Below are positions 968 to 31,512 of a stretch of 64,000 nt of DNA, in pieces. The stretch is from positions 62,001 to 126,000 of IMG/VR virus record IMGVR_UViG_3300032236_001613; one strand, given 5' to 3'. Positions within the stretch are counted from its first letter, which is position 1. Each line of letters starts with the position of its first letter. The notes under the pieces were generated by a model. That model was not told the DNA's origin. It saw only the letters and a list, made by a program, of their open reading frames with translations, and ran no database searches. A program made the position numbers and the translations under genes.

Positions 968-1201
968 TTAATCAAAGTTACCAATGGATAGAGTCACGCT
1001 TGAACGGATTACGCGAGCCAAGAGTAGGATTGCAGCAGTATGTTGGATATCAAGCTGTTGAGTAGTCCAATGATAGTAGTTAACCACAGCCCAGTTCCAT
1101 AGTTGACTAACCAGTACAGCAGCGAATAGTACAGCTACGATTGTTAGAGCTGTGCGTAAGAACAGTTCGTTCCAGGAGGGTAGTTTGTTTGTGTCTAACA
1201 T
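968..1201 (-). CDS. Small membrane protein
   Basis: Hydrophobic segment; TAAGGA RBS; upstream -35/-10 at ~1238-1266. Confidence 0.65.
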   Translation of the reverse strand: MLDTNKLPSWNELFLRTALTIVAVLFAAVLVSQLWNWAVVNYYHWTTQQLDIQHTAAILLLARVIRSSVTLSIGNFD

Positions 1202-1330
1202 AGTGATCGGATCCTTATGTGTTAGTGTGTAGAGAGTATTGTACGAGGGTTAGTTGGAGATGTCAAGTGTTAGTAAAAAATCTGCGCGATACGCTAGTGC
1301 GTAGTATTCTACAGCGGGGTATTATGGTCG

Positions 1331-1603
1331 TTAGGCAAAAGTATGTATCCAACGCCAGTCGCTGTACTTAAGTAGCAATAGAGTGTATTCTGGTGGAGTG
1401 TGTATAGTTAGCAGTTCGATATCGCCTCTTTCTATTAGAGGAGCTGCCACTTTGTATTCGCGTCGTCCAGGAGGGAGTTCTTTAACACAGTAGTGGGCAA
1501 ATGTCAGTTGATGATAGCCGCCCACTTCCTGTATGTAACATAACAAGTGATCGATTTTAAAGTATCTAGGCCAATTAGTTGCGATCATCGCGAGATAGTG
1601 CAA
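1331..1603 (-). CDS. Hypothetical protein
   Basis: ORF in minus-strand run. Confidence 0.5.
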   Translation of the reverse strand: MHYLAMIATNWPRYFKIDHLLCYIQEVGGYHQLTFAHYCVKELPPGRREYKVAAPLIERGDIELLTIHTPPEYTLLLLKYSDWRWIHTFA

Positions 1604-1766
1604 ACAAGCGGTAGATATTGTAGACAGTAATCACTGCTGCTGCTGTAAAAATGATCTTCAGTAGGACTGCGCCCGCAGGTGGGTAGAGGTAAGCCACTAC
1701 GAAAACTGCAAAAATAGTAGCCAATAACAGGGCTGTCTTAGCAGCCGCAACCATATCGATATTCAT
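1575..1766 (-). CDS. Small two-TM membrane protein
   Basis: Two hydrophobic helices; AGGAG RBS. Confidence 0.7.
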   Translation of the reverse strand: MNIDMVAAAKTALLLATIFAVFVVAYLYPPAGAVLLKIIFTAAAVITVYNIYRLFALSRDDRN

Positions 1767-1820
1767 AATCTTCTGCTCCTTTTTAAAGTGTGTACATTAT
1801 ACTAGAGTTAGAGTCGGCTG

Positions 1821-2210
1821 TCAACGACGCTGCAGCAGCTCGGTCAAGCAGCGGGCCAAGTAGTAGTCTTCGTGCTCAATAGCACGTACAGCCAAACTTT
1901 TGACATTAGCCCAAAGATCGGGTTGACTGTCCTCTGCAGCGTAGTGTTCTTCGACCTGCACACCACGAGTCTTCAACTGCTCAATCAACTCTGGATAGGC
2001 TGCGTCGTTGCGAACATAAACACCCTGTTCGCTGTCGTAGACCTGCGTGTTGACTCTAAGCCGCACCGGGTCCAGAGTCTCAGTAACAGCTTTGGACTGC
2101 CGAAGATCCATGCTGGTCAACTCGCGAATGGCCTTAATCACCCGAACACGATAATCGCCCAGACTTTCTGCGGGCATGACGATGGTGATCTCTTTGGGCA
2201 AACGGATCAT
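1821..2210 (-). CDS. Ribosomal protein bL12 (L7/L12) C-terminal-domain-like protein
   Basis: RVRVIKAIRELTSMDLRQSKAVTE resembles bL12 CTD [24 protein letters not shown]; start moved to ATG 2210 (TAAGGAG RBS, promoter at 2238-2266). Confidence 0.65.
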   Translation of the reverse strand: MIRLPKEITIVMPAESLGDYRVRVIKAIRELTSMDLRQSKAVTETLDPVRLRVNTQVYDSEQGVYVRNDAAYPELIEQLKTRGVQVEEHYAAEDSQPDLWANVKSLAVRAIEHEDYYLARCLTELLQRR

Positions 2211-2269
2211 ATCTAGCTCCTTAGTTAGTAAGCCGTTATTATACTGGAGTTTTACCAGAATGTCAAATA

Positions 2270-2430
2270 GACCCGGGCTAACTCTAGACAATTACATTGC
2301 CGAAAGTTTGCTATCTTGTCCAACCCCCGGGCAGCTGGACTCAACAGGGTTATGTACTCATTTCGTAATGCAGAGCAGCGGCTACCAAAACCCTGCTAAC
2401 ACCTTGCCCGGCTCTGTTTTGTCATTACCC
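2270..2430 (-). ncRNA. Candidate structured ncRNA with pseudoknot
   Basis: ORF-free unit between two promoters; nested stems GTAATG/CATTAC and CAGAGC/GCTCTG; loop CAGGGTT can pair with downstream AACCCTG. Confidence 0.45.
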
Positions 2431-2458
2431 GTACATTATAGCAGGTTTTACCAGAATG

Positions 2459-3001
2459 TCAAGCCCGATCTACAGGTTGCCAAATACACTGATCCCAAGT
2501 GGATACTTTGATGTGGTCTTGACTGTCCGTATCGGATTGTGCTAGAAATAGCTCCTCGTATTCGGCCGGATTGTAGGCTATTAGATTGTCTACTTCCATG
2601 CCAAACGGAACGTCGCTTTCTTGATCCTGAAACACCCAACGTCCGGGTTCAATTTCACGCATAGCGAACCGTTCACGAGCTTCTTCGTCAAGTCCTACTA
2701 CACGTAGGCAATGACAGGGCTTGCCGTTTGTAGAGTTGTATAGTGCTTCACTAGTGATCACGTAATAATAGTTAGATCCACTATCTTCCATAGGCTTACG
2801 CTCGCGTACTCGATCGCCGACCTTAAATGGGCTAGGGATCTGTCTGTTCTTTCGAGCAGTAGCAGCCAATTCATCCATTTCTTTTATAAATTCCTTCAAC
2901 TTATCCGTATGCTCTTGTTCTTTTTTTGTAGACTTGATTAACTGGTTGATCAACCAGTATACGATTAATACTCCAATGATACATTGTACGATCATGACCA
3001 T
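2459..3001 (-). CDS. Membrane-anchored hypothetical protein
   Basis: N-terminal TM, FKVGDRVR motif, C-terminal WDQCIWQP shared with 12988..13353. Confidence 0.75.
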   Translation of the reverse strand: MVMIVQCIIGVLIVYWLINQLIKSTKKEQEHTDKLKEFIKEMDELAATARKNRQIPSPFKVGDRVRERKPMEDSGSNYYYVITSEALYNSTNGKPCHCLRVVGLDEEARERFAMREIEPGRWVFQDQESDVPFGMEVDNLIAYNPAEYEELFLAQSDTDSQDHIKVSTWDQCIWQPVDRA

Positions 3002-3004
3002 GGT

Positions 3005-3373
3005 TTATACTCCTCCAAACCAGCTAGTATACCAAGACTTTTTGGGTTTATACTGTTCTTGCTGTTTAGCTTCGCGTGCTATATACTCTTGTTCCTTATA
3101 GGCGGCCAGTTCTCGACGAGCGTCACGGCCATTTTCGATAGCTTGCTCCAAATCTCGTCGGTTTTGATATGCCCGATGATGTAGGTGATCAATTTCTTCG
3201 GCAGCTTCTCTTATTTGTCGTTTGTAGTCTGCTAACAAGGCAGCGGAACGTGCAGTTTCATCTTTAAGTTCTTGGATGTGCAGGCGCTGTAATTCCACAA
3301 TGGTGGTGCTATCTGCCAACATAGTGGCCAATTGGTCTTTGTCCAAATTAAGCAGATCGGGTTTGCTCAACAT
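3005..3373 (-). CDS. Coiled-coil protein
   Basis: Heptad-like helix, aromatic C-terminus KKSWYTSWFGGV; AGGAG RBS. Confidence 0.75.
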   Translation of the reverse strand: MLSKPDLLNLDKDQLATMLADSTTIVELQRLHIQELKDETARSAALLADYKRQIREAAEEIDHLHHRAYQNRRDLEQAIENGRDARRELAAYKEQEYIAREAKQQEQYKPKKSWYTSWFGGV

Positions 3374-3376
3374 TGT

Positions 3377-3574
3377 TTACTCCTTTTCTTTAAACTCGGG
3401 CATATGCTGAGACCAATCATATGTACCTACTTCATGATCCTCAGTCGGTTCTGGCAGTTGGAGTTTCAAAGCTTTGATCTCATCTTTAAGAGCACGGTTC
3501 TTGGCACGCAGGCCTGCTACAGTTTTCTCCAGCTGCTCACTGTACTCTTCGTAACTAAATTTGGGTCGAGACAT
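3377..3574 (-). CDS. Small coiled-coil protein
   Basis: RBS; directly downstream of promoter 3606-3634. Confidence 0.75.
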   Translation of the reverse strand: MSRPKFSYEEYSEQLEKTVAGLRAKNRALKDEIKALKLQLPEPTEDHEVGTYDWSQHMPEFKEKE

Positions 3575-3636
3575 TTCTGTTGCTCCTTACTGTCTAAGTG
3601 CGTATATTATACTAAGGTTTTACCGAAAGGTCAAGT

Positions 3637-3906
3637 CTATTTTTCAGTTTTGATTGCCTTAGCCACCATAGCTTCAATTTCTTTAACCACAGCAGCCAGT
3701 ATTGAACGGTAATATAATGATAGATTGTGTGCTATAACCCACACGATAGCCAATGTCCCGTAGAAGATCTTAGGTGGTTCGTGCCATAGTAAGGCACCTA
3801 GTGAGGTCCATGCAGCAATAGCGATAGCGAGCCGCTGTAGCAGCTCGCTTCGGCTAATGTTAGTAGTTACTCGAACTTCACTCACCATCAAACCCGCTTC
3901 ATGCAA
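3637..3906 (-). CDS. Small membrane protein
   Basis: Two hydrophobic segments; true start may be downstream of the annotated one. Confidence 0.55.
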   Translation of the reverse strand: MHEAGLMVSEVRVTTNISRSELLQRLAIAIAAWTSLGALLWHEPPKIFYGTLAIVWVIAHNLSLYYRSILAAVVKEIEAMVAKAIKTEK

Positions 3907-4727
3907 GTAATTTCAGCGAAGTTCGTCCAACTGTCCGGAAAGGCTACCTTCAAGTCTGCAATCTTAATCACAGCACGACATGACAGCTCCAACATACGCT
4001 CGCTATTATCATGAATGAAGTCAAGAATTGCTTTCTTTTCTTCTTCTTCGAAGCTGTACTTCTGCAGCATACCTGATTCAGTAACGTGACGCAGCCAGAT
4101 CAGCTTTTCACGATCGGTATCCATCTGTAGGTCAATGTAGTGGCAACGCGACTCAATCGCCTTCAAGTGGTTACGGAGTTTCTTAGAGCGCACGAAATCA
4201 AACTTCAAGTTGGTAATGAAGATTGCGCCACCCAAGAACTCAAAGCGATCTGGAATACCTTCACGTCGTAGCAAGCGACTGTCCTTGTTCCATGAAATGA
4301 AACGACGTTCGCTACTGTCAAGAGCGCCTTTAAGAGTGTTCAAGCTCTCTTCTTCTTCAAGTACAGTATCACAGTCGTCAAAGCCGATCACGTTCTTTTC
4401 TTCGCGGAACTCAAAGAGTTTAGCATATAGACCAATGCTAGATGCTGTACCTTTGACAATCTCATAGCGTGGCTTGCGACCGGCCAGTAGATTAAACAGA
4501 TCATCCTTAGCCAGGATTTCGCCTACGCCGTGGCTCTTGCCTACGCCAGCAGGACCTGATACAATAAGAGCACGAACGTGGCCTTGCTTAACGGCGCGGG
4601 TTACGTCGTGGAATACCTTAAAACGATTTTGCAAGCGGGTAAGAATCTGTGCATCAGTTTCTTTAGCAACAGACTTAGCAACGTCGGCAATACGATCCTG
4701 ATCCAATTCAATGGTGCTTTTGGTCAT
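3888..4727 (-). CDS. Phage P-loop (AAA-type) ATPase
   Basis: Walker A GPAGVGKS, Walker B IGFDDCD, sensor-like IFITN, ESRC arginine-finger region. Confidence 0.85.
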   Translation of the reverse strand: MTKSTIELDQDRIADVAKSVAKETDAQILTRLQNRFKVFHDVTRAVKQGHVRALIVSGPAGVGKSHGVGEILAKDDLFNLLAGRKPRYEIVKGTASSIGLYAKLFEFREEKNVIGFDDCDTVLEEEESLNTLKGALDSSERRFISWNKDSRLLRREGIPDRFEFLGGAIFITNLKFDFVRSKKLRNHLKAIESRCHYIDLQMDTDREKLIWLRHVTESGMLQKYSFEEEEKKAILDFIHDNSERMLELSCRAVIKIADLKVAFPDSWTNFAEITCMKRV

Positions 4728-4800
4728 TTAAGGTCCTTAAAAAGTAGAATTAATTACGCATCAACAGGTATATTATACTGCAAAGACCCTAATGGGTCAA

Positions 4801-5082
4801 TTAAGACTTAGTATCTTTGAGTACTCGTTTAATCATCTTCTGAAGCATTTGGTTGTTCGACTCGGAATCTTCTAGTTCGGCAGTCAAACGGGCGACCTGA
4901 GCAGTCAAACGCTCAACTTCGATCTTTTGGCGCTCTAGATCGTTCTGTAACTGCTGCTGTTGGGTTCGCGCATTCTGGGCGTCTAGTTTATATGCGTCAC
5001 GGCTTTTGATAGCTAGGGCTGCTAGCTCCATAAGCGGAGTGTCTGCAGTAGGTACAGGGTTATTGGCGGGTTCTAGTTTCAT
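4801..5082 (-). CDS. Coiled-coil protein
   Basis: Heptad pattern; AAGGA RBS; upstream promoter. Confidence 0.7.
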   Translation of the reverse strand: MKLEPANNPVPTADTPLMELAALAIKSRDAYKLDAQNARTQQQQLQNDLERQKIEVERLTAQVARLTAELEDSESNNQMLQKMIKRVLKDTKS

Positions 5083-5158
5083 AGTATGGACATCCTTCTA
5101 GTGTAGTAATTATCCAGGTAGATAACTATACACTAGAAGTTTTGGATAGTCAACCAGA

Positions 5159-5365
5159 TTATTCTGCAAATTCTTGCTCTTGGTAGTAAGCCAAGAGTTC
5201 GCGTTGAATAGTAGGAATCATCTCACCATCGCTTTCAATAGTAAAGCGGATAGGTGCATGACGCCAACTCTGTGTACGCTGGAACTCAGCGAACAGTTTT
5301 CGATGTCGAGCATTAGTTACATCAAACAATTCGTAAGGACGCATATGCAGATTCAATCGGCTCAT
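5159..5365 (-). CDS. Hypothetical protein
   Basis: AAGGAG RBS, compact operon spacing. Confidence 0.7.
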   Translation of the reverse strand: MSRLNLHMRPYELFDVTNARHRKLFAEFQRTQSWRHAPIRFTIESDGEMIPTIQRELLAYYQEQEFAE

Positions 5366-5380
5366 GGTCGTTCTCCTTAG

Positions 5381-5662
5381 TTAGGCTGCAACGGATTCGG
5401 ATTTCTTCTGTGTCTTAGTGCGCCGGGCTAGGCCGTCTTCAAGAGCTGCACGGACCTCAGCACGCCCATCATCAAAGTCAATGCTGATCAAGTATTCGAT
5501 AGCAGCGATCTTAGTCATGGGTTCGGGCAATTCGATCATATCAATGCAGTCATGATCAGTTTTGGCCAAAACCTTAACGCGAGCTGCATCGGTAGCAAAC
5601 CTGGTTTTGAACTGGCCTTTCAAACGGCTAACGCCGGCGTGTGTAAAAAGTTTATCAGTCAT
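5381..5662 (-). CDS. Hypothetical protein
   Basis: GAGGAG RBS; promoter ~5691-5720. Confidence 0.75.
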   Translation of the reverse strand: MTDKLFTHAGVSRLKGQFKTRFATDAARVKVLAKTDHDCIDMIELPEPMTKIAAIEYLISIDFDDGRAEVRAALEDGLARRTKTQKKSESVAA

Positions 5663-18521: not shown

Positions 18522-18899
18522 TTACTTACTAGATGTCTGGACGAAGTGAGCTTGAGACCTATAGCCTAGTTCGCGTAGGCTAGTATTAATCAACTGCATG
18601 ACCGTCTTAGAAACGGGCGTGTCTGTTCTTGGAGGTTGAATACTCCAGGGCATTCCTCGCTCTTTGGGTTTCAAAAATGGATATCGATACTTCTCACCAT
18701 TAGGGTAACGAAACTCTTGCCCAGTTTTTTTGAGCAAGGTATTGTAAAGCCAATAAAGCATGTTGCTACGCTGACGTGCACGATCGTAGATATCTTTAGA
18801 AGATTGATCAATCTGTTCGATACCCCGACGCAAGGCACTGAGAGCTAATGCTTGAAGCTCGGGGTCTGGGTTACTTTCTAACAGTTCTTGTATCTGCAT
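18522..18899 (-). CDS. Late protein with capsid-targeting-like N-terminus
   Basis: MQIQELLE; TAAATA 4 nt upstream of ATG. Confidence 0.75.
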   Translation of the reverse strand: MQIQELLESNPDPELQALALSALRRGIEQIDQSSKDIYDRARQRSNMLYWLYNTLLKKTGQEFRYPNGEKYRYPFLKPKERGMPWSIQPPRTDTPVSKTVMQLINTSLRELGYRSQAHFVQTSSK

Positions 18900-19715: not shown

Positions 19716-19771
19716 AAAACTATTATATGCTAGCACCAGCATAAGGTCAACAATTAACAATAAATACTCCT

Positions 19772-20947
19772 ATGCGCATCCAAGAGCTACTATTAGAATA
19801 CAACCGACAGATTACCCTACAAAAGATAGGCGATCAGCTGACTCAAACAGCAGCTAGAGAACACACTACTGCAGAAGAGGCTATAGCTGCACTGGAAGAA
19901 ATGGATCCAACCGCAAATAAACAGTATACTCCTTGGCTGGCACGACAATACATTAAGCAGCAGTTTAGATTAGAGGACGCAGATAGAATACGCACAGTAC
20001 TAGATAACTTTGGTCAACTTAAATCAAGACTACCTGTTGAACAAAGAGATATAGGACGTATGGATTTTTACCAACTTGATGATTTAATTAATCAAGTATT
20101 AGATGTTAAACTAGAGGTGGATAAGCCTATTGAAGGAGGTACTTTCCCTATAGTTCCTGACTCCCGAGTCTTATACAACGGACCATTAGGGCAATTAGCT
20201 ATACCAGAAACCCGAGAAGCCAGTTGCGAATTAGGTCGTGGTACTGAATGGTGTACGGCTTATACAAAATCAAATAATCAATTTGATAGTTATAATCGAA
20301 GAGGTCCTTTATACGTATGGCGAGACAAAAATGGTGAGAAATATCAATTCCATTTCAGCGGCGGCCTACAAATGATGGATAGTCGAGATCGCCCTATAGA
20401 AAAAGATAAAATAGATTATTTTAGAAAACAGCATCCTGTACTTAAAAAATTGTTTCGACAAATAGAATCTCAAGCGTTAAAAGACCCTATATTAGCAACT
20501 CAGTATGCCGAAAAAGTAATTGGAGGACGTTGGCCCGAAGGCGAGGCCACAATAGCACAAACCTCACAGGCAGCATATTACTACGCTCGAAAAATAATCA
20601 AAAGTCGGTTTCCTGAGGGGGAAGCAGCATTATTAGAACCATCAACTGACATTAATTTTCTAATTTTTTATGCCGAACAAGTAATCAAAGGTCGTTGGCC
20701 TGAAGCTGAAGAAATGATAGCACAAAACCCATCGGCAGCATTTTACTACGCCCGACACATAATCAAAGGTCCTTTTCCTGAGGGGGAAGACGCAATAGCT
20801 CAAGATGACAGGCTCGCTTACAACTATGCTGTAGAAATACTTAAAGATCGTTTCCTAAAAGGAGAAAAGACTCTACAAAAGAGCAATGTTTATTGGTACC
20901 ATTACAAAAAACATTTCGGAATAAAACAACGTAAAGGTAAAACCTAA
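19772..20947 (+). CDS. Putative internal head protein with C-terminal helical repeats; paralog of 23127..24458
   Basis: MRIQELLLE; DPT..K.YT.WL, WCTA..N.F..Y..GP.Y, GEKYQFHF; ~6 repeats of A..YA..IIK.RWPEGE..I. Confidence 0.85.
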   Translation: MRIQELLLEYNRQITLQKIGDQLTQTAAREHTTAEEAIAALEEMDPTANKQYTPWLARQYIKQQFRLEDADRIRTVLDNFGQLKSRLPVEQRDIGRMDFYQLDDLINQVLDVKLEVDKPIEGGTFPIVPDSRVLYNGPLGQLAIPETREASCELGRGTEWCTAYTKSNNQFDSYNRRGPLYVWRDKNGEKYQFHFSGGLQMMDSRDRPIEKDKIDYFRKQHPVLKKLFRQIESQALKDPILATQYAEKVIGGRWPEGEATIAQTSQAAYYYARKIIKSRFPEGEAALLEPSTDINFLIFYAEQVIKGRWPEAEEMIAQNPSAAFYYARHIIKGPFPEGEDAIAQDDRLAYNYAVEILKDRFLKGEKTLQKSNVYWYHYKKHFGIKQRKGKT

Positions 20948-20949
20948 TA

Positions 20950-22125
20950 ATGCGTATCCGAGAACTAATTGATCACTCACACCCTATAGTTTACTTAGAC
21001 ATGGACGGAGTATTGGCAGACTTTGATCACGGTTATCGCGAACTATCTGGGCAAGATCCTAAAGACACATTTATACCTAATCCTAAAGATGATCCTGTGC
21101 TTAGCCGAATGATTGGCACAGATTTCTTTGCTAGATTACCTAAGTACAAGACAGCGGATCGGCTAGTTCAAATGGTGGTGGATCGATTTGGATCTTACTC
21201 TATATGCTCAAGCCCATTACGCGGCGATCATGATAACAGTGAGCACAATAAAAAACAATGGATACAGCAACATCTTAATCCACAACCTGCATCCATAGTT
21301 ATAACTGGTAGAAAAGAAAAATACGCTATACGTAATGGAGTTCCGAACATCTTGATTGACGATAAGTCATCTAATATTGCTAAATGGACTGCTAAAGGTG
21401 GAATAGGCATACTCTATTACGCTCCTAGAGATTCTTTAAATCAAGTGGCTAAAGTTCTTGATCAGTCTTTAAACGAAGAAAAAATCGAGTTCGATCCTGC
21501 TGATCCCGAACATGAAGAACAGTTTCTTAGACCTAAAGAGTTTCGTAAACAGGGCGCATACTCTTATGTAACTCATCATCCTAGTCATGATCCACATATG
21601 GTTCAAAAGACAGATCGTACCGCTTTACCACCTGAACAGAATCCTTTTTATCAATATGCTCGAGCAATTGCTACAGCAGAAAAACGTAACACTAACCCAT
21701 ACTTGCCTAGAGTACGAGTAGTTGATGCCGAAGAAACAGATTGGGGTGGCGTAGTCTTTACTTACGAATGCGAAAGATTACATGACTTTACCGAAGTAGA
21801 ACACCAGTTGGGCGAAGATGTAGTTGTAAACATAGGCAGAAAAATGTTTAATGATTACGACACATTATCACGAAATTACATTAGAGACCACAGAGGTGAT
21901 AACCTCAATGCTTGGGAAGTATTAGCAGGAATATTGCACTTTATGCAAGTAGGACATAAATGGAATTGGGTTAAAGACCCATTATTCAAACAGGCACTAG
22001 ATATTCTAAAGGAAATTGACGAGCAGACTGGTAACTTCTTTCAATGGGATTGGAAGGCAGATAACCTAATGATTAGGTTCACCAGTAAAGGTCCTCAGCT
22101 AGTGCTTACGGATCCGTTAAGTTAA
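20950..22125 (+). CDS. HAD 5'(3')-deoxyribonucleotidase fused to a T7 gp0.7-like protein kinase domain
   Basis: YLDMDGVLADF and LIDDK (HAD); QGAYSYV..K, PYLPRV, WDWKADNLM, LTDP (kinase). Confidence 0.75.
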   Translation: MRIRELIDHSHPIVYLDMDGVLADFDHGYRELSGQDPKDTFIPNPKDDPVLSRMIGTDFFARLPKYKTADRLVQMVVDRFGSYSICSSPLRGDHDNSEHNKKQWIQQHLNPQPASIVITGRKEKYAIRNGVPNILIDDKSSNIAKWTAKGGIGILYYAPRDSLNQVAKVLDQSLNEEKIEFDPADPEHEEQFLRPKEFRKQGAYSYVTHHPSHDPHMVQKTDRTALPPEQNPFYQYARAIATAEKRNTNPYLPRVRVVDAEETDWGGVVFTYECERLHDFTEVEHQLGEDVVVNIGRKMFNDYDTLSRNYIRDHRGDNLNAWEVLAGILHFMQVGHKWNWVKDPLFKQALDILKEIDEQTGNFFQWDWKADNLMIRFTSKGPQLVLTDPLS

Positions 22126-22467: not shown

Positions 22468-23130
22468 ATGCGTGCACAAGAAGTATTTGAATCTTATAGA
22501 TGGAGCTGGTCAGACGATGATGCAGAACAGCTCTCTAGTAAGATCCCACCCAAATATCTAGAAAGATTACGTAATCTCACTGTCCGGGATCGACGAGTTA
22601 GCAACTTTATGGATACCCATAACATTAACTTGGTTCAATTTCTCACAAGATTTCAGGAACAAAAGGGTTTAGATCCAGTAAACAAAACTGAGTTAGCATC
22701 TGATTTTATTGTTAAGATTCCGAAAAATAATCCTGAAGGTTTTTATTTTGCAAATAAATCTAATGAAGTTAGAGCCGGTGCCGAATTAGATATTGCAGAT
22801 CAAGCACATACAGATCTATATCGCGTTTATATGAAGACCAAACTTCGCGCAGAAAAGATAAACACTCCATTTACATTAACATTAAAAGAAGCCGCCGACA
22901 TCTTTAAAGCACAGGGAGGCAAATGTGCATTAACTGGAGAAAAGTTAGGAAAAGGACTAGGATCATCACCCAGTATGGATCAACGAGTTCCTAGAGTGAG
23001 AGGCGGCCCTGGTTATACTAAAGACAATGTACAATGGGTTACCGCACAGATTAACTTTGCTAAACAGAATTTAACTAATGAAGAATTTGCAGATCTTTGT
23101 AAAAAAGTTGCTGCACATTCCGGGAATTAG
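22468..23130 (+). CDS. HNH-like (bba-Me) endonuclease domain protein
   Basis: QGGKCALTG..SPSMDQ..GYTKDNVQWV..IN.AK; N-terminus MRAQEVFE. Confidence 0.7.
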   Translation: MRAQEVFESYRWSWSDDDAEQLSSKIPPKYLERLRNLTVRDRRVSNFMDTHNINLVQFLTRFQEQKGLDPVNKTELASDFIVKIPKNNPEGFYFANKSNEVRAGAELDIADQAHTDLYRVYMKTKLRAEKINTPFTLTLKEAADIFKAQGGKCALTGEKLGKGLGSSPSMDQRVPRVRGGPGYTKDNVQWVTAQINFAKQNLTNEEFADLCKKVAAHSGN

Positions 23131-24458
23131 AGTCTGTACCATTTGTCCTTTAACTTTACTAAAAACCTCGATACAGTTTGATACGCATAATGGCCATCAT
23201 ACTCTGTAGGCCCCGATTCCATGTCCCGAATAAGTTCGTTCACAGTATCTTTGAATTGCCTACGATATGTTAAGTCTGCTTGATCTGCGTTGCCTAAGGT
23301 CTTGATTTCATGCTTTCCTGGACCATCCGTGGGTAGATAATAGCGATCAGCTACAACTACTACAGCAGAAAAATCAGGTGGAAATATGGCATATACAAGT
23401 TGGGATGCTTTTTGTCCACGACTGGGTGCAACTCTGAGTGTTTGTAAAAAAGAACCCATATGTACATTAAAAAGTTCTTCAAAAGGATCAACCAACTCCC
23501 ATTCAAACATACCACTTTCTACTAGAATGCAAGAGTACATGCCATTTTCTAATTGACGAGCTTTCCATTTAAGATATTGTTTTGTATGGTTTAATCCATT
23601 ATAAGATGGCTTACGTGGTGGCTTTAACCAACTTAAACGATATTCTTTAGCTTGGTCTGCAAAGATTTTTGATAGCTCAGGAAACCTTCTAACTAGACTG
23701 CTGCCCCACTCACTAATGTCATTATCATGTTCGTCCATAAACTGGTGGCTAGGAAAATGAAACTGGTATTTTTCCCCAGTATGTACAGGCTGTCTAGGTA
23801 TTATAATATACATAGGACCATCTTGGTTATAGCTGTTAAACATGTTGTTGTTTGTAGCAGCTGTACACCAACGAGTGTTCTGCCCATAAAAGCAAGCTGC
23901 TTCTCGATCATTTGGTTTTATAACAATTAGACGATCATCACGAAATACTTCATCGTAATCGCCGCGGGGTGACTTCTGCTTTTGGTCATCTCTACGACTT
24001 CTGACTGCAGAAAAAGCGTTATATAACGTTCTAAAATTATAAGCGTTAATATCTCTAAGATTAGTTAATCTGCGACGTTTGTAGTCATCAAATTTTTCTA
24101 GAGAATCTGTAATCTCAGTAGCTACATCTTCTGCATGCATCGCGTCCTTACAATAGTTTTTTATTAACCATTGAGTGTATTCTTTATGTGGGGTGGGATC
24201 CATTAATTCAAAAATATTTACTAAGATTTTTTTAGACTCAGCTTCGATTGCATGGCGAGGATTATCATAGTCGTTGTGTTCGTCATAGGCCATACATAAA
24301 ATACTGTACCCTCTTTCACTAAGTAGGTCAGCAGATTTTAGACGTTGTATGTGATTATAACTTTCCAATTCAAAGAAATGTTTATACAACTTATCACCAT
24401 AATTCTTAACGGTGATTTCATGATTATATTCGACAAGGAACAGTTCGTTGAGTAACAT
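23127..24458 (-). CDS. Putative internal head protein; paralog of 19772..20947
   Basis: MLLNELFLVE; DPTPHKEYTQWL, WCTAATNNNMFNSYNQDGPMY, GEKYQFHF. Confidence 0.85.
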   Translation of the reverse strand: MLLNELFLVEYNHEITVKNYGDKLYKHFFELESYNHIQRLKSADLLSERGYSILCMAYDEHNDYDNPRHAIEAESKKILVNIFELMDPTPHKEYTQWLIKNYCKDAMHAEDVATEITDSLEKFDDYKRRRLTNLRDINAYNFRTLYNAFSAVRSRRDDQKQKSPRGDYDEVFRDDRLIVIKPNDREAACFYGQNTRWCTAATNNNMFNSYNQDGPMYIIIPRQPVHTGEKYQFHFPSHQFMDEHDNDISEWGSSLVRRFPELSKIFADQAKEYRLSWLKPPRKPSYNGLNHTKQYLKWKARQLENGMYSCILVESGMFEWELVDPFEELFNVHMGSFLQTLRVAPSRGQKASQLVYAIFPPDFSAVVVVADRYYLPTDGPGKHEIKTLGNADQADLTYRRQFKDTVNELIRDMESGPTEYDGHYAYQTVSRFLVKLKDKWYRL

Positions 24459-24460
24459 TA

Positions 24461-24871
24461 TTAGGCCTGATCTGCATCCATCACATCACAAGTAAGTGGC
24501 CAAGGTCCACGATGCGGCGGGCGTTGCATTGCTTTATAATGATCATAATTGGTATTGGCTGCAGCATGATTTTCGATGTTACTTGCTACTGTTTCGGCAA
24601 TGTCTCTATTGCTGTAACTAGCAACTGGTGCCCACCCTTGCCCGTGTGCTTGATGTACACGGCGTGCAGCTTCCCCAGGGCTTAATCTAGTACCTGCTAC
24701 TACAGCTTCGACTACTACTTCAAATGGTGTAACTGCATCATTTAGGATTACTACTGTAAATCCTCCAGGGACGTATAGTGGTACTTCTTGTCTTTGACGA
24801 ACTGTTGGACGATCAACTACTGTATCATCGTCAGTATCTACTGGTGCTTCAACTAATTCTTGTATACGCAT
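24461..24871 (-). CDS. clpS: ATP-dependent Clp protease adaptor ClpS
   Basis: VVILNDAVTPFEVVV, EA.RRVHQAH.QG, AET, PLTC motifs of the ClpS fold. Confidence 0.8.
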   Translation of the reverse strand: MRIQELVEAPVDTDDDTVVDRPTVRQRQEVPLYVPGGFTVVILNDAVTPFEVVVEAVVAGTRLSPGEAARRVHQAHGQGWAPVASYSNRDIAETVASNIENHAAANTNYDHYKAMQRPPHRGPWPLTCDVMDADQA

Positions 24872-24875
24872 ACGA

Positions 24876-25268
24876 TTATGCCACCGTTGGTCTTATGGAT
24901 TTTTGTAATCCTTGTATATTTTTACCTAGATCGTCTTGATCTTTTTGTATTTGTTGACTTTTTTGTACAATTGCATCAAGTTCTTTCTGTTGTTCTGGGT
25001 TGTTAGCTAGTGGTAGACCTTCGGGATTTTTAAGAGCTTGTTTGGCAAGATTGTATCCGCCGGAAAATGCTCCAGCAGCACTGCCCATTTTAGCTGCTCC
25101 TACCTGTGCATTTGCCACAGTAGAACCCAATGCTGATCCAACTTTGCCAGCTAACTTACTAGCAATACCACCACTGCCTGGCGTATCTGTACTACCTGCT
25201 GTCGGAGTTCCAATAGTAGTAGTTCCACCCTGTTCAATTAAGTCAATATAATATCTTAGGTTTTTCAT
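24876..25268 (-). CDS. Gly/Ala-rich putative head protein
   Basis: MKNLRYYIDLIE; late box 5 nt upstream. Confidence 0.75.
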   Translation of the reverse strand: MKNLRYYIDLIEQGGTTTIGTPTAGSTDTPGSGGIASKLAGKVGSALGSTVANAQVGAAKMGSAAGAFSGGYNLAKQALKNPEGLPLANNPEQQKELDAIVQKSQQIQKDQDDLGKNIQGLQKSIRPTVA

Positions 25269-25306
25269 AAAGATATTTAGCTGAGTTTAAACAATAAATA
25301 GATTGT

Positions 25307-25498
25307 ATGCGCATACATGATTTATTAGAAAACTTTGCAGATGGTAAAGGTCCAGGACGTCCAGGCGATAGTCAACGTCATGGTATTCCAAAGAAAGCCA
25401 CAATGGCTCAGCTACAGAAAGCTGCTCGAGCTAAAGGACGTAAAGGACAATTAGCACGTTGGCAAATTAATATGCGTCGTGGTAAGAAGAAAAAGTAA
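25307..25498 (+). CDS. Small basic putative head protein (NFADGK type)
   Basis: MRIHDLLE-NFADGKGPGRPG; K/R-rich; late box. Confidence 0.8.
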   Translation: MRIHDLLENFADGKGPGRPGDSQRHGIPKKATMAQLQKAARAKGRKGQLARWQINMRRGKKKK

Positions 25499-25707: not shown

Positions 25708-26280
25708 TTATCCCCAGCTAATACTAGCTCCATTTTCTTGAGCAAATTTTACCATTTTGATCAGTGCATCAATATATCTATCAATTTGACTTTGACTACG
25801 ACCCACATCTATCATTCTAGGACCAGTATGTCCGATATGTGTAACACCTTGATCGTCAGTATGCTGGCGGCCCATAGGACCACGTTCATCACTAGGGTCC
25901 TGAGTATATTGGCTAGTATTTTGATTCTTTAACTGGATAAGTCTACGCATAAGCTTAGGTAGATCTTGATGATGTATTATGCCCGAATAGTCAGTATCTG
26001 TAATTCCTAGCATACGTTGTATCTCAAACCCGTTGGAATTACTTACACTTAGTTCAGGAGCACTAGAAACCCATTCTTCGGTTTCTCCCGCACCATCACA
26101 GCGTCTGCATGTTTCTTCGCCGGTACTCCACCGCTGTTTTCCTGTGCCATCACATACAAAACAAGGCTCCATTTGTTTGCTTTGCCATTCCATACTGGAC
26201 CAAACTTTATCCCCGTCATAATCTGTTAATTTTACAGGGTTAAAGGTCATGCCTTCAATTAATAAATCTTTAATACGCAT
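25708..26280 (-). CDS. Zinc-finger (CxxCxGxG x2) putative head protein
   Basis: MRIKDLLIE; CFVCDGTG, CRRCDGAG. Confidence 0.8.
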   Translation of the reverse strand: MRIKDLLIEGMTFNPVKLTDYDGDKVWSSMEWQSKQMEPCFVCDGTGKQRWSTGEETCRRCDGAGETEEWVSSAPELSVSNSNGFEIQRMLGITDTDYSGIIHHQDLPKLMRRLIQLKNQNTSQYTQDPSDERGPMGRQHTDDQGVTHIGHTGPRMIDVGRSQSQIDRYIDALIKMVKFAQENGASISWG

Positions 26281-27160: not shown

Positions 27161-27424
27161 ATGAGAGCAAGAGACTTCATCACTGAAAAGAAACGTAAAA
27201 TTAAATCGCCTACACGTAGCCAATGCTCAGTAGGCAAATCTACTATGAGCAACGTAAGACGCTCACAGTGTGTTTCACTAGGATATCTAGCACATGATTC
27301 CGATCATACTATGGGTACAGGTACTCAGGGTAAAAAAGGTACAGGAGTACCACTTAGAGGTAAAAAAGCTAAGAGTGAAAAGCATGGTGGTCCTGTTAAA
27401 AACTACGGCGGTAGCCACAGCTAA
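27161..27424 (+). CDS. Small basic putative head protein
   Basis: MRARDFITE; K/R/G-rich; TATAAATA 5 nt upstream. Confidence 0.75.
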   Translation: MRARDFITEKKRKIKSPTRSQCSVGKSTMSNVRRSQCVSLGYLAHDSDHTMGTGTQGKKGTGVPLRGKKAKSEKHGGPVKNYGGSHS

Positions 27425-27457: not shown

Positions 27458-28012
27458 ATGTATAACTTTATAAAATATGTCACTGAAGGCCGCAAAGAAC
27501 GACTAGAACAAGTTACGCTACCCTATGATCGTAATGATTTAGGTAATAGCCTAAGCAAAGATACGCTAGATTTACACTACGGTAAACTTTACAAAGCATA
27601 TGTAGATAGATATAATAAAGGTGAAGGTGACGATGATTTTAACGAAGCTGGTGCTTTCCTACATGCTATATACTTCACACAGTTCCGTTCACTAACTAGC
27701 AATAATCAACCTACAGAGCAAAGTTTAGAATTTGTTGAACAACATTTTAAATCATTTGAAAACTTTAAGAAAGAATTCTTAAAAACTGCTATGGGCATAC
27801 AAGGAGCAGGATGGGTTTACTTAGCCCGTAATGGCGAGCTTAAAACAATTAAGAATCACGAAATTAGAAAAGACATTGTACTATTGATTGATTGGTGGGA
27901 ACATTCGTTTCTGATTGACTTCGGTAGTGACAAAGAGAAATACCTAGAAGGCCAATGGCGCATTATTGATTGGACAAAAATAAACTATCTCTTGACAGGT
28001 ATGTCTAAGTAA
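27458..28012 (+). CDS. sod: Fe/Mn superoxide dismutase
   Basis: Metal ligands LH(YGK), FLH, DWWEH; L..LPY..; G.GW..L. Confidence 0.9.
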   Translation: MYNFIKYVTEGRKERLEQVTLPYDRNDLGNSLSKDTLDLHYGKLYKAYVDRYNKGEGDDDFNEAGAFLHAIYFTQFRSLTSNNQPTEQSLEFVEQHFKSFENFKKEFLKTAMGIQGAGWVYLARNGELKTIKNHEIRKDIVLLIDWWEHSFLIDFGSDKEKYLEGQWRIIDWTKINYLLTGMSK

Positions 28013-28038: not shown

Positions 28039-28374
28039 ATGAAAAAGTTACTTTTAATTCTAGCACTAACAATTCCGTTTGCTACAGCTCACGCCGATCC
28101 TGAACATCATCACGATCGTGATCATCACGAATGGCACGAACGCGGCGGTCATTTTGGCTGGGGTGAATTCGTTGGCGGAATAATCTTAGGTGGCATCATT
28201 GCACATGAAGTAAATGGTCATTACTATGACAACGACGAAGACGAAGTTCGCCGCGTATCTGTATGTAACGATTATCCTGTAGTTGATCAATGGGGACACT
28301 ACGTCTTTGATAATCAGGGACATATGATAATTGAACGTCGTTGCCACGATGAATGGATAAGGGTAAATCGATGA
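28039..28374 (+). CDS. Exported His-rich protein
   Basis: Signal peptide MKKLLLILAL..AHA; GGIILGGII. Confidence 0.75.
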   Translation: MKKLLLILALTIPFATAHADPEHHHDRDHHEWHERGGHFGWGEFVGGIILGGIIAHEVNGHYYDNDEDEVRRVSVCNDYPVVDQWGHYVFDNQGHMIIERRCHDEWIRVNR

Positions 28375-28703
28375 TAACTGTATCTGCTGCTGCTGCAAAA
28401 CGCATTTGGGAAATACTAGAAGAGGAAGGCAATACTGACTTTGCTTTTAGAATTTCTGTAATCGGCGGCGGATGCTCAGGCTTTAAGTATAACTTTTCTA
28501 TTATTGACCCAAAATGGGTTAATTTCGACGACTATCATGTAATTGAAACTAACGGAATAAAGTTAGTAATAGACACAATGAGTATGGAATACCTAGATGG
28601 ATCCACAGTAGATTTTATTAAACGTTTGTTCAGCAGCGAATTTAAAATAAACAATCCTAAAGCTAAACAAAAATGCGGCTGTGGAAATAGTTTCGGCGCA
28701 TGA
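28371..28703 (+). CDS. Iron-sulfur cluster carrier, HesB/IscA/ErpA family
   Basis: GGGCSGFKY and CGCGNSF; start at 28371 (ATGA overlap). Confidence 0.92.
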   Translation: MITVSAAAAKRIWEILEEEGNTDFAFRISVIGGGCSGFKYNFSIIDPKWVNFDDYHVIETNGIKLVIDTMSMEYLDGSTVDFIKRLFSSEFKINNPKAKQKCGCGNSFGA

Positions 28704-29013: not shown

Positions 29014-30321
29014 ATGCATCACATTATTCAAGAACTTGCTGCAGACAATAGCCGCCTAGCTAAGGAAGCTATCCTTAAGCGTGAAGCCAACGCTGGTAAC
29101 GAAGAATTCTTCGAAGGTTGCCGTCTTGCGTTGGATAACCTTATGTCATTTGGTGTTAAGAAGGTTCCTACTTATTCTGGTCCAGATGGGCAAGGATTGC
29201 CGTGGGCTGCATTTACACAACTAGCAAATAGTCTTTATCGACGAGAGCTTACTGGGCATGCTGCCCGTGACGCTATTGAACTAGCAATGAGTGCTAGCAC
29301 CAAGGATCAGTGGAATCACTGGTACCGATTGATTTTGTTAAAAGATCTCAAGTGTGGCGTTAGTGAAAAGACCATTAACAAAGTACTTAAGAATACTAAG
29401 ATTAAGCCTGTGCCAGGATTCTCCTGTATGTTAGCTCACGACGGTGCTAATCATGAAAAGAAAATTGCAGGTAAGAAGTTACTTGAACCTAAGCTTGACG
29501 GTGTGCGTGTACTCACTGTTATTAATACAGTTAATCGCACCGTAACACAATACACTAGAAATGGTAAGATCCTAGAAAACTTTTCGCATATTACACAAGC
29601 TATCGAAGAACATATCGACCAGTTTGGACGTAGCTGTGTCCTTGACGGTGAAATGATTAGTACTAGCTTTCAGGCTCTTATGAAGCAGGTTCATCGCAAG
29701 GAAAATGTACAAGCAGATGATGCTGTGCTAATGTTGTTTGACATTATTCCTCTAACTGAATTCCAACTGGGTAAGAGTGCATTAGGGCAGCGTCGACGTA
29801 GCAATTTGCTTAAATCTTTTAAACCAGTGTTTGACCAAATTGGTAACATTGGTGTTATTCCGCAAACTGAAGTGGACCTTGATAGTTATGTAGGCGAGCT
29901 GCAGTTTAAAGAATTTAACAAAGAAGCTATTGATAATGGCTATGAAGGAATAATGATAAAAGACGTCGACGGAGTTTACGAATGTAAGCGTTCTGTCAAA
30001 TGGCTTAAGCAAAAACCTTATATTGAAGTAAGTCTTGCTGTAGTTGGCCTTGAGGAAGGCACTGGCAAGAATGAAGGACGCTTGGGTGCACTTATCTGTG
30101 AAGGCGAGGACGACGGGAAGCACATTCGAGTTAACGTTGGTAGTGGATTTACTGATGAACAGCGTCGAGAATTTTGGGAAGAACAAGACATCATGATTGA
30201 TCAAGTTGTAGAAATTCGTGCAGATGCTGCTACACTTAATCAAGATAGCGACAACATCTATAGTTTGCGTTTTCCAAGATTTCTACGGTTCCGTGGATTT
30301 AGCGTAGGAGAAAAAATCTAA
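29014..30321 (+). CDS. lig: ATP-dependent DNA ligase
   Basis: EPKLDGVR (motif I), LDGEM, FDI, EGIMIK, WLKQK, C-terminal OB fold SLRFPRF. Confidence 0.95.
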   Translation: MHHIIQELAADNSRLAKEAILKREANAGNEEFFEGCRLALDNLMSFGVKKVPTYSGPDGQGLPWAAFTQLANSLYRRELTGHAARDAIELAMSASTKDQWNHWYRLILLKDLKCGVSEKTINKVLKNTKIKPVPGFSCMLAHDGANHEKKIAGKKLLEPKLDGVRVLTVINTVNRTVTQYTRNGKILENFSHITQAIEEHIDQFGRSCVLDGEMISTSFQALMKQVHRKENVQADDAVLMLFDIIPLTEFQLGKSALGQRRRSNLLKSFKPVFDQIGNIGVIPQTEVDLDSYVGELQFKEFNKEAIDNGYEGIMIKDVDGVYECKRSVKWLKQKPYIEVSLAVVGLEEGTGKNEGRLGALICEGEDDGKHIRVNVGSGFTDEQRREFWEEQDIMIDQVVEIRADAATLNQDSDNIYSLRFPRFLRFRGFSVGEKI

Positions 30322-30740: not shown

Positions 30741-30959
30741 GTGGCAAAAGAATCAGCAATTGAATTAGAAGGGTTTGTAGAAGAAGTGTTGCCGAATGCA
30801 ACATTTAAGATTAAAGTTAACGAAAAGCACAGCTTGCTTGCTGTGATTTCTGGCAAAATGCGCCAGAACAAAATCCAGATTCTCACTGGTGATCGTGTGC
30901 GGGTTGAAGTTTCCCCCTATGATCTAACACGTGGTCGAGTAGTTTATCGAGAGAAATAA
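30741..30959 (+). CDS. infA: Translation initiation factor IF-1
   Basis: [40 protein letters not shown]. Confidence 0.97.
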
Positions 30960-30960
30960 G

Positions 30961-30992
30961 AAAAAGCGCAGTGTAAAAACTGCGCTTTTTTT
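30961..30992. terminator. Bidirectional rho-independent terminator
   Basis: AAAAAGCGCAGT-GTAAAA-ACTGCGCTTTTT between convergent infA and HNH. Confidence 0.9.
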
Positions 30993-31512
30993 ATGGGCTG
31001 ATATATTTTACCCAAACTGGATGGATGCGATCGTCATCCACTGACAGTTTGCGCTTTTCTGCGACTAATTGGTGATAAGTGGGCTTAACCGGCGTCTTCT
31101 TAGGACGAATGCGGTGATCGTTACCTTTAGTTGAGTTACATTTTCCACATGCGCAGACAGTATTCTCGTATGTGTTTTTACCACCATGACTTAATGGTAA
31201 TACATGATCGAGTGTAGCATCTTTGCGACTAACGTCTACGCCGCAGTATTGGCAGATGTAACCATCGCGTAGAAACACATTCTGCTTACTCCAGCGAATG
31301 CTTGCTTTGCGTTTTTCATATTCTTTTAAAATAACTACTGCTGGTACGCGAGTTTCCCAATTTACGCTGCGAACAATCCAGTCTTCGTGCCATTCAAGCA
31401 CTACGACCTTGTCCAGAACTAATTGAAGAATTGCTTCTTTCCAGCTCATGGTACTGAGTGGAATCATTGAAACAGGGCTACCGTCAGTGTTAAGTTTTAA
31501 CGTTGCTGCCAT
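30991..31512 (-). CDS. HNH endonuclease (McrA-like)
   Basis: RD...CQYCG..TLDHVLP.S.GG...N.V.AC..CN..K. Confidence 0.9.
   Translation of the reverse strand: MAATLKLNTDGSPVSMIPLSTMSWKEAILQLVLDKVVVLEWHEDWIVRSVNWETRVPAVVILKEYEKRKASIRWSKQNVFLRDGYICQYCGVDVSRKDATLDHVLPLSHGGKNTYENTVCACGKCNSTKGNDHRIRPKKTPVKPTYHQLVAEKRKLSVDDDRIHPVWVKYISP

Follow-up and report, generated by a model that had tools for sequence, protein, structure and literature searches.

In E. coli, ClpS turns its protease toward N-degron substrates and away from other clients. Phages are also known to encode inhibitors of Lon and Clp, such as T4 PinA and lambda RexB. Capsid targeting sequences are, to our knowledge, known almost only from T4, and we know of no ClpS cargo described for that phage. 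The first 10 residues of T4 IPIII suffice for loading into the prohead, where the gp21 protease cuts after L/I-x-E, and an Asp at the cleavage Glu position stops processing but not packaging (PMC9026906). Earlier work described Clp sets with ClpS in Rak2-like jumbo phages and took them to act with host ClpAP (PMC6102473; PMC7824862), and the presence of ClpS in jumbo phages was noted by Iyer et al. 2021 (PMC7824862). In the literature, we found no description of a tagged or virion-borne ClpS. The novelty of the protein described here lies in the combination of tag and ClpS, and in the existence of a conserved clade set apart by an insertion and a motif in the extension; each component was already known.

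A tagged ClpS-family protein and its metagenomic clade

We analysed a window of 64,000 nucleotides that corresponds to bases 62001-126000 of an IMG/VR record (328,068 bp, 37% G+C, 396 ORFs, estimated to be ~92% complete), which as a whole is labelled G000; coordinates without that label are those of the window. The phage encodes T4-like head and tail genes, including gp13, gp15, sheath, terminase, portal and a Peptidase_S77 protease. A megablast search of the locus against 50,697 deposited phage genomes found no near DNA relative, and the nearest cultured relative found for a gene adjoining the ClpS-like ORF is the Pseudomonas jumbo phage PA5oct. A search of sequencing runs found the locus DNA in freshwater and unnamed metagenomes; all matches were DNA runs, and the locus was found in no RNA run. 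The ClpS-like ORF and its parts are as follows.

24461..24871, minus strand: tagged ClpS-like ORF, 136 aa, starting MRIQELVEAPV (Pfam, PDB sequence matches, AF2/Foldseek)
24848..24871, minus strand: N-terminal tag MRIQELVE, codons 1-8, with a predicted cut after L-V-E8 that would leave Ala9 (T4 L/I-x-E rule)
within 24461..24871, minus strand: predicted mature form after the predicted cut behind E8, residues 9-136, 13.9 kDa, pI 5.0
24764..24847, minus strand: disordered extension, residues 9-36, with family-conserved V-x-D-R-P-P-V and E-V-P-L motifs (AF2 pLDDT, alignments)
24551..24760, minus strand: Pfam-matched ClpS core, residues 38-107, with N44, D45, T48, P49 and H76 (Pfam, alignment)
24500..24553, minus strand: family-specific insertion of ~18 aa, N-T-x-Y-D-H-Y-[RK]...G-P-W, in the alpha3-beta3 loop (alignments)

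The initial annotation had called this ORF a ClpS homolog with an MRIQELVE tag, and all of our searches agree. Pfam ClpS (PF02617) matches residues 38-107 with 40.4 bits against a cut-off of 23 (E 2.5e-10), the genome-wide profile scan gives 41.1 bits for ClpS, and every match in a PDB sequence search is a ClpS. The AF2 model has a pLDDT of 82.8, with residues 1-30 low (below 60) and residues 1-18 disordered; a Foldseek search of the PDB with this model returned ClpS for at least the top 30 matches, with E-values of about 6e-6 to 1e-5 and target TM-scores of 0.8-0.87. We conclude that the 136-aa ORF almost certainly belongs to the ClpS family.

The protein is one member of a clade. A word search found 43 further metagenomic protein clusters of 124-146 aa that are 47-93% identical to it; our clade alignment of 44 sequences consists of these 43 and the window's protein (the search gave 44 hits, of which one was omitted). 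IMG/VR holds 19 loci with the same ClpS-like protein, several of them on contigs of 130-368 kb. Since a tblastn search against the 50,697 phage records, like the megablast search, gave no match, the clade is known only from metagenomes. Nearly all members start with the tag, M-[RK]-x-x-E-[LIF]...[LIVF]-x-E. In five relatives, a gp13-like neck gene immediately precedes the tagged ClpS gene, which has gp14/15-like genes on one side and the sheath gene on the other. Elsewhere in the clade, the gene carries an ATAAATA motif of its own or comes after another tagged gene. As a separate observation, a related 219-kb contig (L010) carries three tryptophan-halogenase-like genes and a 2OG-Fe(II) oxygenase gene at 1017..5642, beside the neck/sheath module.

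Compared with bacterial ClpS (E. coli 1MBU/2W9R/3O2B, C. crescentus 3DNJ and A. tumefaciens ClpS2 4YJM), the tagged protein has the same fold, a [DE]-[IV]-A-E-T motif and a disordered N-terminal extension of ~25-28 aa; 28 flexible residues would be left after the predicted cut. However, it is only 23% identical to E. coli ClpS, and bacterial ClpS has neither the 18-aa insertion, which lies before the last strand, nor the DRPPV motif in the extension. The chief difference is that the tagged clade has a predicted cleavable tag of the capsid-targeting type and a phage late-gene context.

Residues N44, D45, T48, P49 and H76 are equivalent to N34, D35, T38, P39 and H66 of E. coli ClpS, and they are invariant, together with D90 and W124, in all 44 clade sequences. 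Of these, N34, D35, T38 and H66 line the pocket of E. coli ClpS and bind the alpha-amino group of the N-degron. The gatekeeper M40 of bacterial ClpS is mostly replaced by Phe (22 sequences) or Ala (15 sequences), and the position of E. coli D36 varies (Pro in 16, Asn in 10 and Asp in 10 of the 44). Loss of D36 is not disqualifying, because mycobacterial ClpS (W-D-D-P-V-N) has Pro there yet binds Leu, Phe, Tyr and Trp (bioRxiv 10.1101/2024.06.12.598358). In canonical ClpS, the alpha3-beta3 loop borders the N-degron pocket (bioRxiv 10.1101/2024.06.12.598358), and the ~18-aa insertion beside that pocket could reshape or block it. Given that the pocket equivalents are invariant, N-degron binding is plausible, and we lean towards the view that the tagged protein has retained it. 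With regard to docking, the E79 equivalent is Asp (D90) in 44/44 sequences and the E82 equivalent is Glu (E93) in 43/44, whereas the K84 equivalent is Val or Ile in 40/44. These three E. coli positions we take to be the docking surface for the N-domain of ClpA/ClpC (Zeth/Guo 2002).

The tag, its other carriers and the late-promoter-like motifs

The tag is shared by many genes of the phage. A relaxed tag pattern matches 25 of the 396 ORF starts, as compared with 5 of 1647 internal Met positions, and about 20 of the matches are convincing. The carriers cluster at 48-52 kb and 80-89 kb of G000, the latter being 18.5-27.4 kb of the window, and 11 of the ~20 are grouped around the ClpS-like gene. 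The tagged genes and other features of this region are listed below; a slash marks the predicted cut.

18522..18899, minus strand: tagged 125-aa protein, MQIQELLE/S, with an ATAAATA motif (tag scan, motif)
19772..20947, plus strand: tagged 391-aa paralog, MRIQELLLE/YNRQ, with ATAAATA 5 nt before the ATG (BLASTP, motif)
20950..22125, plus strand: tagged 5'-nucleotidase-like protein, MRIRELID-H, with Asp for the cleavage Glu (profile match, tag scan)
22468..23130, plus strand: tagged endonuclease VII/HNH-like protein, MRAQEVFE/S (tag scan)
23127..24458, minus strand: tagged 443-aa paralog, MLLNELFLVE/YNHE, homolog of PA5oct gp205
24876..25268, minus strand: first gene of the operon, 130 aa, Gly/Ala-rich, pI 9.2, tag variant MKNLRYYIDLIE/Q (ORF, tag scan)
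25269..25280, minus strand: CTAAATA and a 5-nt spacer before the operon's first ATG, T4-late-promoter-like, with no Shine-Dalgarno sequence (motif scan)
25307..25498, plus strand: tagged 63-aa very basic protein, MRIHDLLE/N, pI 11.8 (ORF, tag scan)
25708..26280, minus strand: tagged 190-aa protein, MRIKDLLIE/G (tag scan)
27161..27424, plus strand: tagged 87-aa basic protein, MRARDFITE/KKRK, pI 10.5 (ORF, tag scan)
27458..28012, plus strand: Fe/Mn superoxide dismutase, just downstream of the tagged-gene cluster
28353..28703, plus strand: IscA-type Fe-S assembly protein, likewise just downstream
29014..30321, plus strand: ATP-dependent DNA ligase, likewise just downstream
30991..31512, minus strand: HNH endonuclease, likewise just downstream

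The ClpS-like gene is in one operon with its neighbours: the stop codon of the 130-aa gene lies 4 nt before the ClpS-like ATG, and the ATG of the 443-aa paralog lies 2 nt after the ClpS-like stop codon. The tag carriers are mutually unrelated, comprising ClpS-, 5'-nucleotidase- and endonuclease VII/HNH-like proteins, a sub-threshold zinc-finger protein, small basic proteins and the two large paralogs; the zinc-finger match, in the 190-aa protein, is a weak one to the DnaJ-type CxxCxGxG (19.7 bits against a cut-off of 32.7). Codons of the tag vary synonymously (CGT/CGC/AGA, ATC/ATA/ATT and CTA/TTA), indicating selection on the peptide rather than on the DNA.

Most tags end in [LIVF]-x-E, a gp21-type prohead-protease site, which in the ClpS-like protein is L-V-E8. 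We took this distal site as the cut for all assignments of the residue after it (P1'); the T4 rule would equally allow a cut at the proximal I-x-E5, which would leave Leu, Phe or Val. A prohead protease of the gp21 family is encoded in the genome (Peptidase_S77, 88.9 bits). Because Asp replaces the cleavage Glu in the 5'-nucleotidase-like protein, this protein might be packaged uncut, as in T4 (PMC9026906). Small tag-bearing ORFs also flank the module of portal, protease, scaffold and capsid genes (G000 306046..306291 and 310468..310671). The former encodes an 81-aa tag-like protein between the portal-like and protease genes and is syntenic with PA5oct gp150, a 73-aa protein that starts MKINDIITE. 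Mass spectrometry found gp150 in virions, and likewise PA5oct gp205, a protein with the start MKLFEVFTLYE that is homologous to the 443-aa paralog (PMC7318152).

The tagged genes are associated with late-promoter-like signals. In 27 genes, among them 11 tagged genes and tail- and neck-like genes, the ATG follows ATAAATA at a distance of 4-8 nt, with promoter-like motif sites at 19767, 22463, 25280, 25302, 26285 and 27156 of the window and 21 more genome-wide. A gp55-like late sigma factor is encoded at G000 295638-295922 (E 1.3e-8). A scan for sigma-70 promoters found 19, with 17.3 expected, and was thus uninformative. The ATAAATA genes have no Shine-Dalgarno sequence; head genes (protease and capsid) carry AGGAG instead. 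This suggests that the late mRNAs are leaderless or near-leaderless and driven by the gp55-like sigma factor. The phage also encodes a translation initiation factor IF-1 (30741..30959, plus strand; Pfam eIF-1a, 79 bits), a gene of possible relevance to the late genes that seem to be leaderless.

Taken in combination, the tag statistics, the gp21-type site, the protease, the late sigma factor, the ATAAATA motif and the PA5oct virion proteins lead us to a capsid-targeting reading: the tag is best read as a propeptide of the T4 CTS type that would target proteins to the prohead core. As with T4 IPI, IPII, IPIII and Alt, a short N-terminal propeptide ending in [LI]-x-E is found on unrelated proteins, with a gp21-family protease, late expression (here putative, from motif and context) and diverse cargo. 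The tag itself differs from that of T4, being M-R-I-x-E-L-x-x-E, whereas T4 IPII and IPIII begin MKTYQEFIAE. The set is also larger than that of T4, at ~20 genes, and the predicted cargo includes a nuclease-like protein, a nucleotidase-like protein and small basic proteins, as opposed to the restriction inhibitor and ADP-ribosyltransferase of T4. We consider it likely, from these sequence features, that the tagged ClpS-like protein is packaged; since its tag resembles the capsid-loading tag of T4, it would probably be injected with the DNA.

Clp context and the proposed role of the tagged protein

The phage encodes other Clp components outside the window, at G000 161.7-165 kb, 150.9 kb, 211.5 kb and 240.2-242.4 kb: a canonical untagged ClpS, a 757-aa ClpA-like protein with Clp_N, a ClpX with a zinc finger and a ClpP. 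The canonical ClpS (G000 163453..163755; 101.8 bits) adjoins genes for Hsp20, heme oxygenase and a ferredoxin-dependent bilin reductase, and resembles the canonical ClpS of Rak2/PA5oct-like jumbo phages, e.g. Atu_ph07 gp708. It has N-D-D-Y-T-P-M and lacks both the tag and the insertion; the tagged copy has both and is only 33% identical to it. With a canonical ClpS present as well, the tagged protein may serve a different function. We compared two complete relatives with terminal repeats, G001 and G003. G003 has both ClpS types as well as ClpA and ClpP. The complete genome of G001, however, encodes the tagged ClpS only, with neither a canonical ClpS nor a Clp_N protein, indicating that the tagged protein is independent of phage ClpA and that any unfoldase partner it has there would need to come from the host.

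A predicted complex of the ClpS-like core with the N-domain of the phage ClpA has an ipSAE of 0.53, as compared with 0.00 for the best control, which we rate as weak support for docking; agreement between the runs extends to 92% or more of contacts, and the partner has a pLDDT of 78 or higher. Of 78 solved complexes, 51 reach the ipSAE mark, as do 2 of 108 mismatches; scores of 0.60 or below account for only 5 of these 78. Memory of solved ClpS-ClpA complexes may explain the pass.

We propose that the tagged protein is a phage-specific divergent ClpS paralog that is packaged, injected and acts as an adaptor. It would be synthesised late from gp55-type ATAAATA promoters, with ~20 other proteins that share the tag, and the tag would dock it onto the prohead core. 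The gp21-family prohead protease would then cut after L-V-E8 and leave Ala9, which is not a degron, and the acidic mature protein of 14 kDa would stay in the head and enter the cell with the DNA. There it would be a ready-made adaptor on host ClpA/ClpC-ClpP and, where present, later on phage ClpA-ClpP, docking on ClpA/ClpC through the D-I-A-E-T surface and the extension, with an intact pocket and a largely conserved motif. Protease choice might thus be shifted toward L/F/Y/W N-termini before phage gene expression, sparing other ClpA clients, e.g. unfolded injected proteins or labile antitoxins, with the phage inhibitors of Lon and Clp as a parallel; this downstream effect on ClpAP choice could follow by analogy with E. 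coli ClpS. For the chain as a whole, of which we infer every step, we put the chances at about even.

The tagged protein could also be read as an adaptor that is not packaged but works late, in the cytoplasm, with the phage's own ClpA-ClpP, in which case the N-terminal motif would act in recognition by ClpX/ClpA or in translation of leaderless mRNA. The phage does encode a ClpA-like protein with Clp_N, ClpX, ClpP and a canonical ClpS, the docking prediction involved the phage ClpA N-domain, and tagged genes lack a Shine-Dalgarno sequence and start 4-8 nt after the promoter-like motif. However, structural genes with equal promoter spacing have no tag, and the synonymous variation in the tag codons points the same way. 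Moreover, the tag ends in a protease site, small tagged ORFs are part of the portal-protease-capsid module, virions of PA5oct contain tagged proteins, and G001 combines a tagged ClpS and more than 20 tagged ORFs with the lack of a Clp_N protein. We therefore consider a non-packaged adaptor unlikely. A protein that is packaged and has no role after injection, either holding new N-termini or peptides in the prohead or serving as a filler internal protein, would share all the tag and context evidence with the injected adaptor, and T4 heads hold hundreds of copies of internal proteins (PMC3012670). Nevertheless, the predicted new N-termini are mostly small or polar and are not ClpS ligands, and the residues that bind the alpha-amino group are conserved across the 44 sequences along with the D-I-A-E-T docking motif, which argues for retained adaptor function; we regard a purely intracapsid role as very unlikely.

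Tyrosine after the tag in the large paralogs

The 391-aa and 443-aa proteins are paralogs (BLASTP 2e-25, 35% identity over 191 aa) from a family with 875 or more metagenomic members, which has the core motifs ADPTxNKEYTQWL, GQGTRWCTA and GEKYQFHF and variable C-terminal modules (DUF4116-like repeats, LRR, HTH_35 and NUDIX). A Foldseek search of the PDB with the model of the 443-aa paralog (pLDDT 87) found nothing at E <= 0.001, and the Atlas gave only viral hypothetical clusters and one weak lead to PcfJ. In this model, residues 1-8 are disordered and the first helix starts at residue 13.

The initial annotation had proposed an N-degron timer, in which prohead cleavage exposes Tyr or Lys on co-packaged cargo and the packaged ClpS shields these proteins or hands them to ClpAP, so setting the lifetime of effectors. 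Its reading of the residues stands: a cut after the tag Glu would leave Tyr on both large paralogs (LLE/YNRQ and LVE/YNHE) and Lys on the protein of 27161..27424 (MRARDFITE/KKRK), and the ClpS identity is secure. Several further observations favour such a scheme. The tag Glu (E10) is invariant in 39 members of the large-paralog family, the close subfamily shows strict conservation of E-Y-[NK]-R, the ClpS-like and 443-aa genes are co-operonic with a 2-nt gap, and in L013, which represents another phage lineage, two E-Y paralogs lie 2-4 kb from the tagged ClpS. The pocket residues of ClpS are conserved, and the first eight residues of the 443-aa protein are disordered in its model.

A general degron design, however, finds no support. 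In the tagged proteins of the phage, P1' is predicted to be L, N, N, S, Y, S, Y, A, Q, N, G, K, D, G or I, with similar residues in the rest; most are N/S/A/G/D/Q, and L/F/Y/W are no commoner there than expected from composition. Neither G001 (17 cut sites in 24 matches) nor G003 (10 in 19) has a predicted L/F/Y/W at P1', and G003 has no homolog of the Tyr-paralog family, yet has the tagged ClpS. Because the tagged ClpS occurs even where the predicted cargo bears no degron, a timer does not account for the clade in general. Strict co-occurrence of the tagged ClpS with the Tyr-paralog family was considered and rejected, a homolog being no more than 10 kb away at just 2 of 21 loci. Within the large-paralog family, the residue after the tag in the best 120 clusters is Tyr in 36, Gln in 49 and Asn in 6, with Tyr confined to one subfamily, and PA5oct gp205 has Asp at that position. 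The modelled helix from residue 13 would leave two residues after Tyr11, which is short for a hand-off. Gln and Tyr alternate within an E-x-[NS]-R motif that is otherwise conserved, which points to the beginning of a structural element and not to a degron under selection; hence, the Tyr that follows the tag seems to reflect structure or lineage. We judge the timer to be quite improbable. The bolder version, in which the prohead protease unmasks Tyr on injected effectors and a ClpS remodelled by its insertion shields them or delivers them to host ClpAP, we hold to be highly improbable; if true, such a degron circuit would be a pre-programmed clock of effector lifetime that runs before any gene expression.

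So far, mentions of phage ClpS have treated it as no more than a curiosity of jumbo-phage gene content. If the tagged ClpS is indeed an injected adaptor, some phages would deliver a protease-specificity factor as a protein at time zero of infection, which would represent a new class of injected host-takeover cargo and would link the proteolysis of virion maturation, through the new N-termini that it creates, to the bacterial N-degron pathway. The tag, with ~20 cargo genes per genome, would then provide a simple sequence rule that predicts the injected proteome of uncultured PA5oct/Rak2-like jumbo phages.
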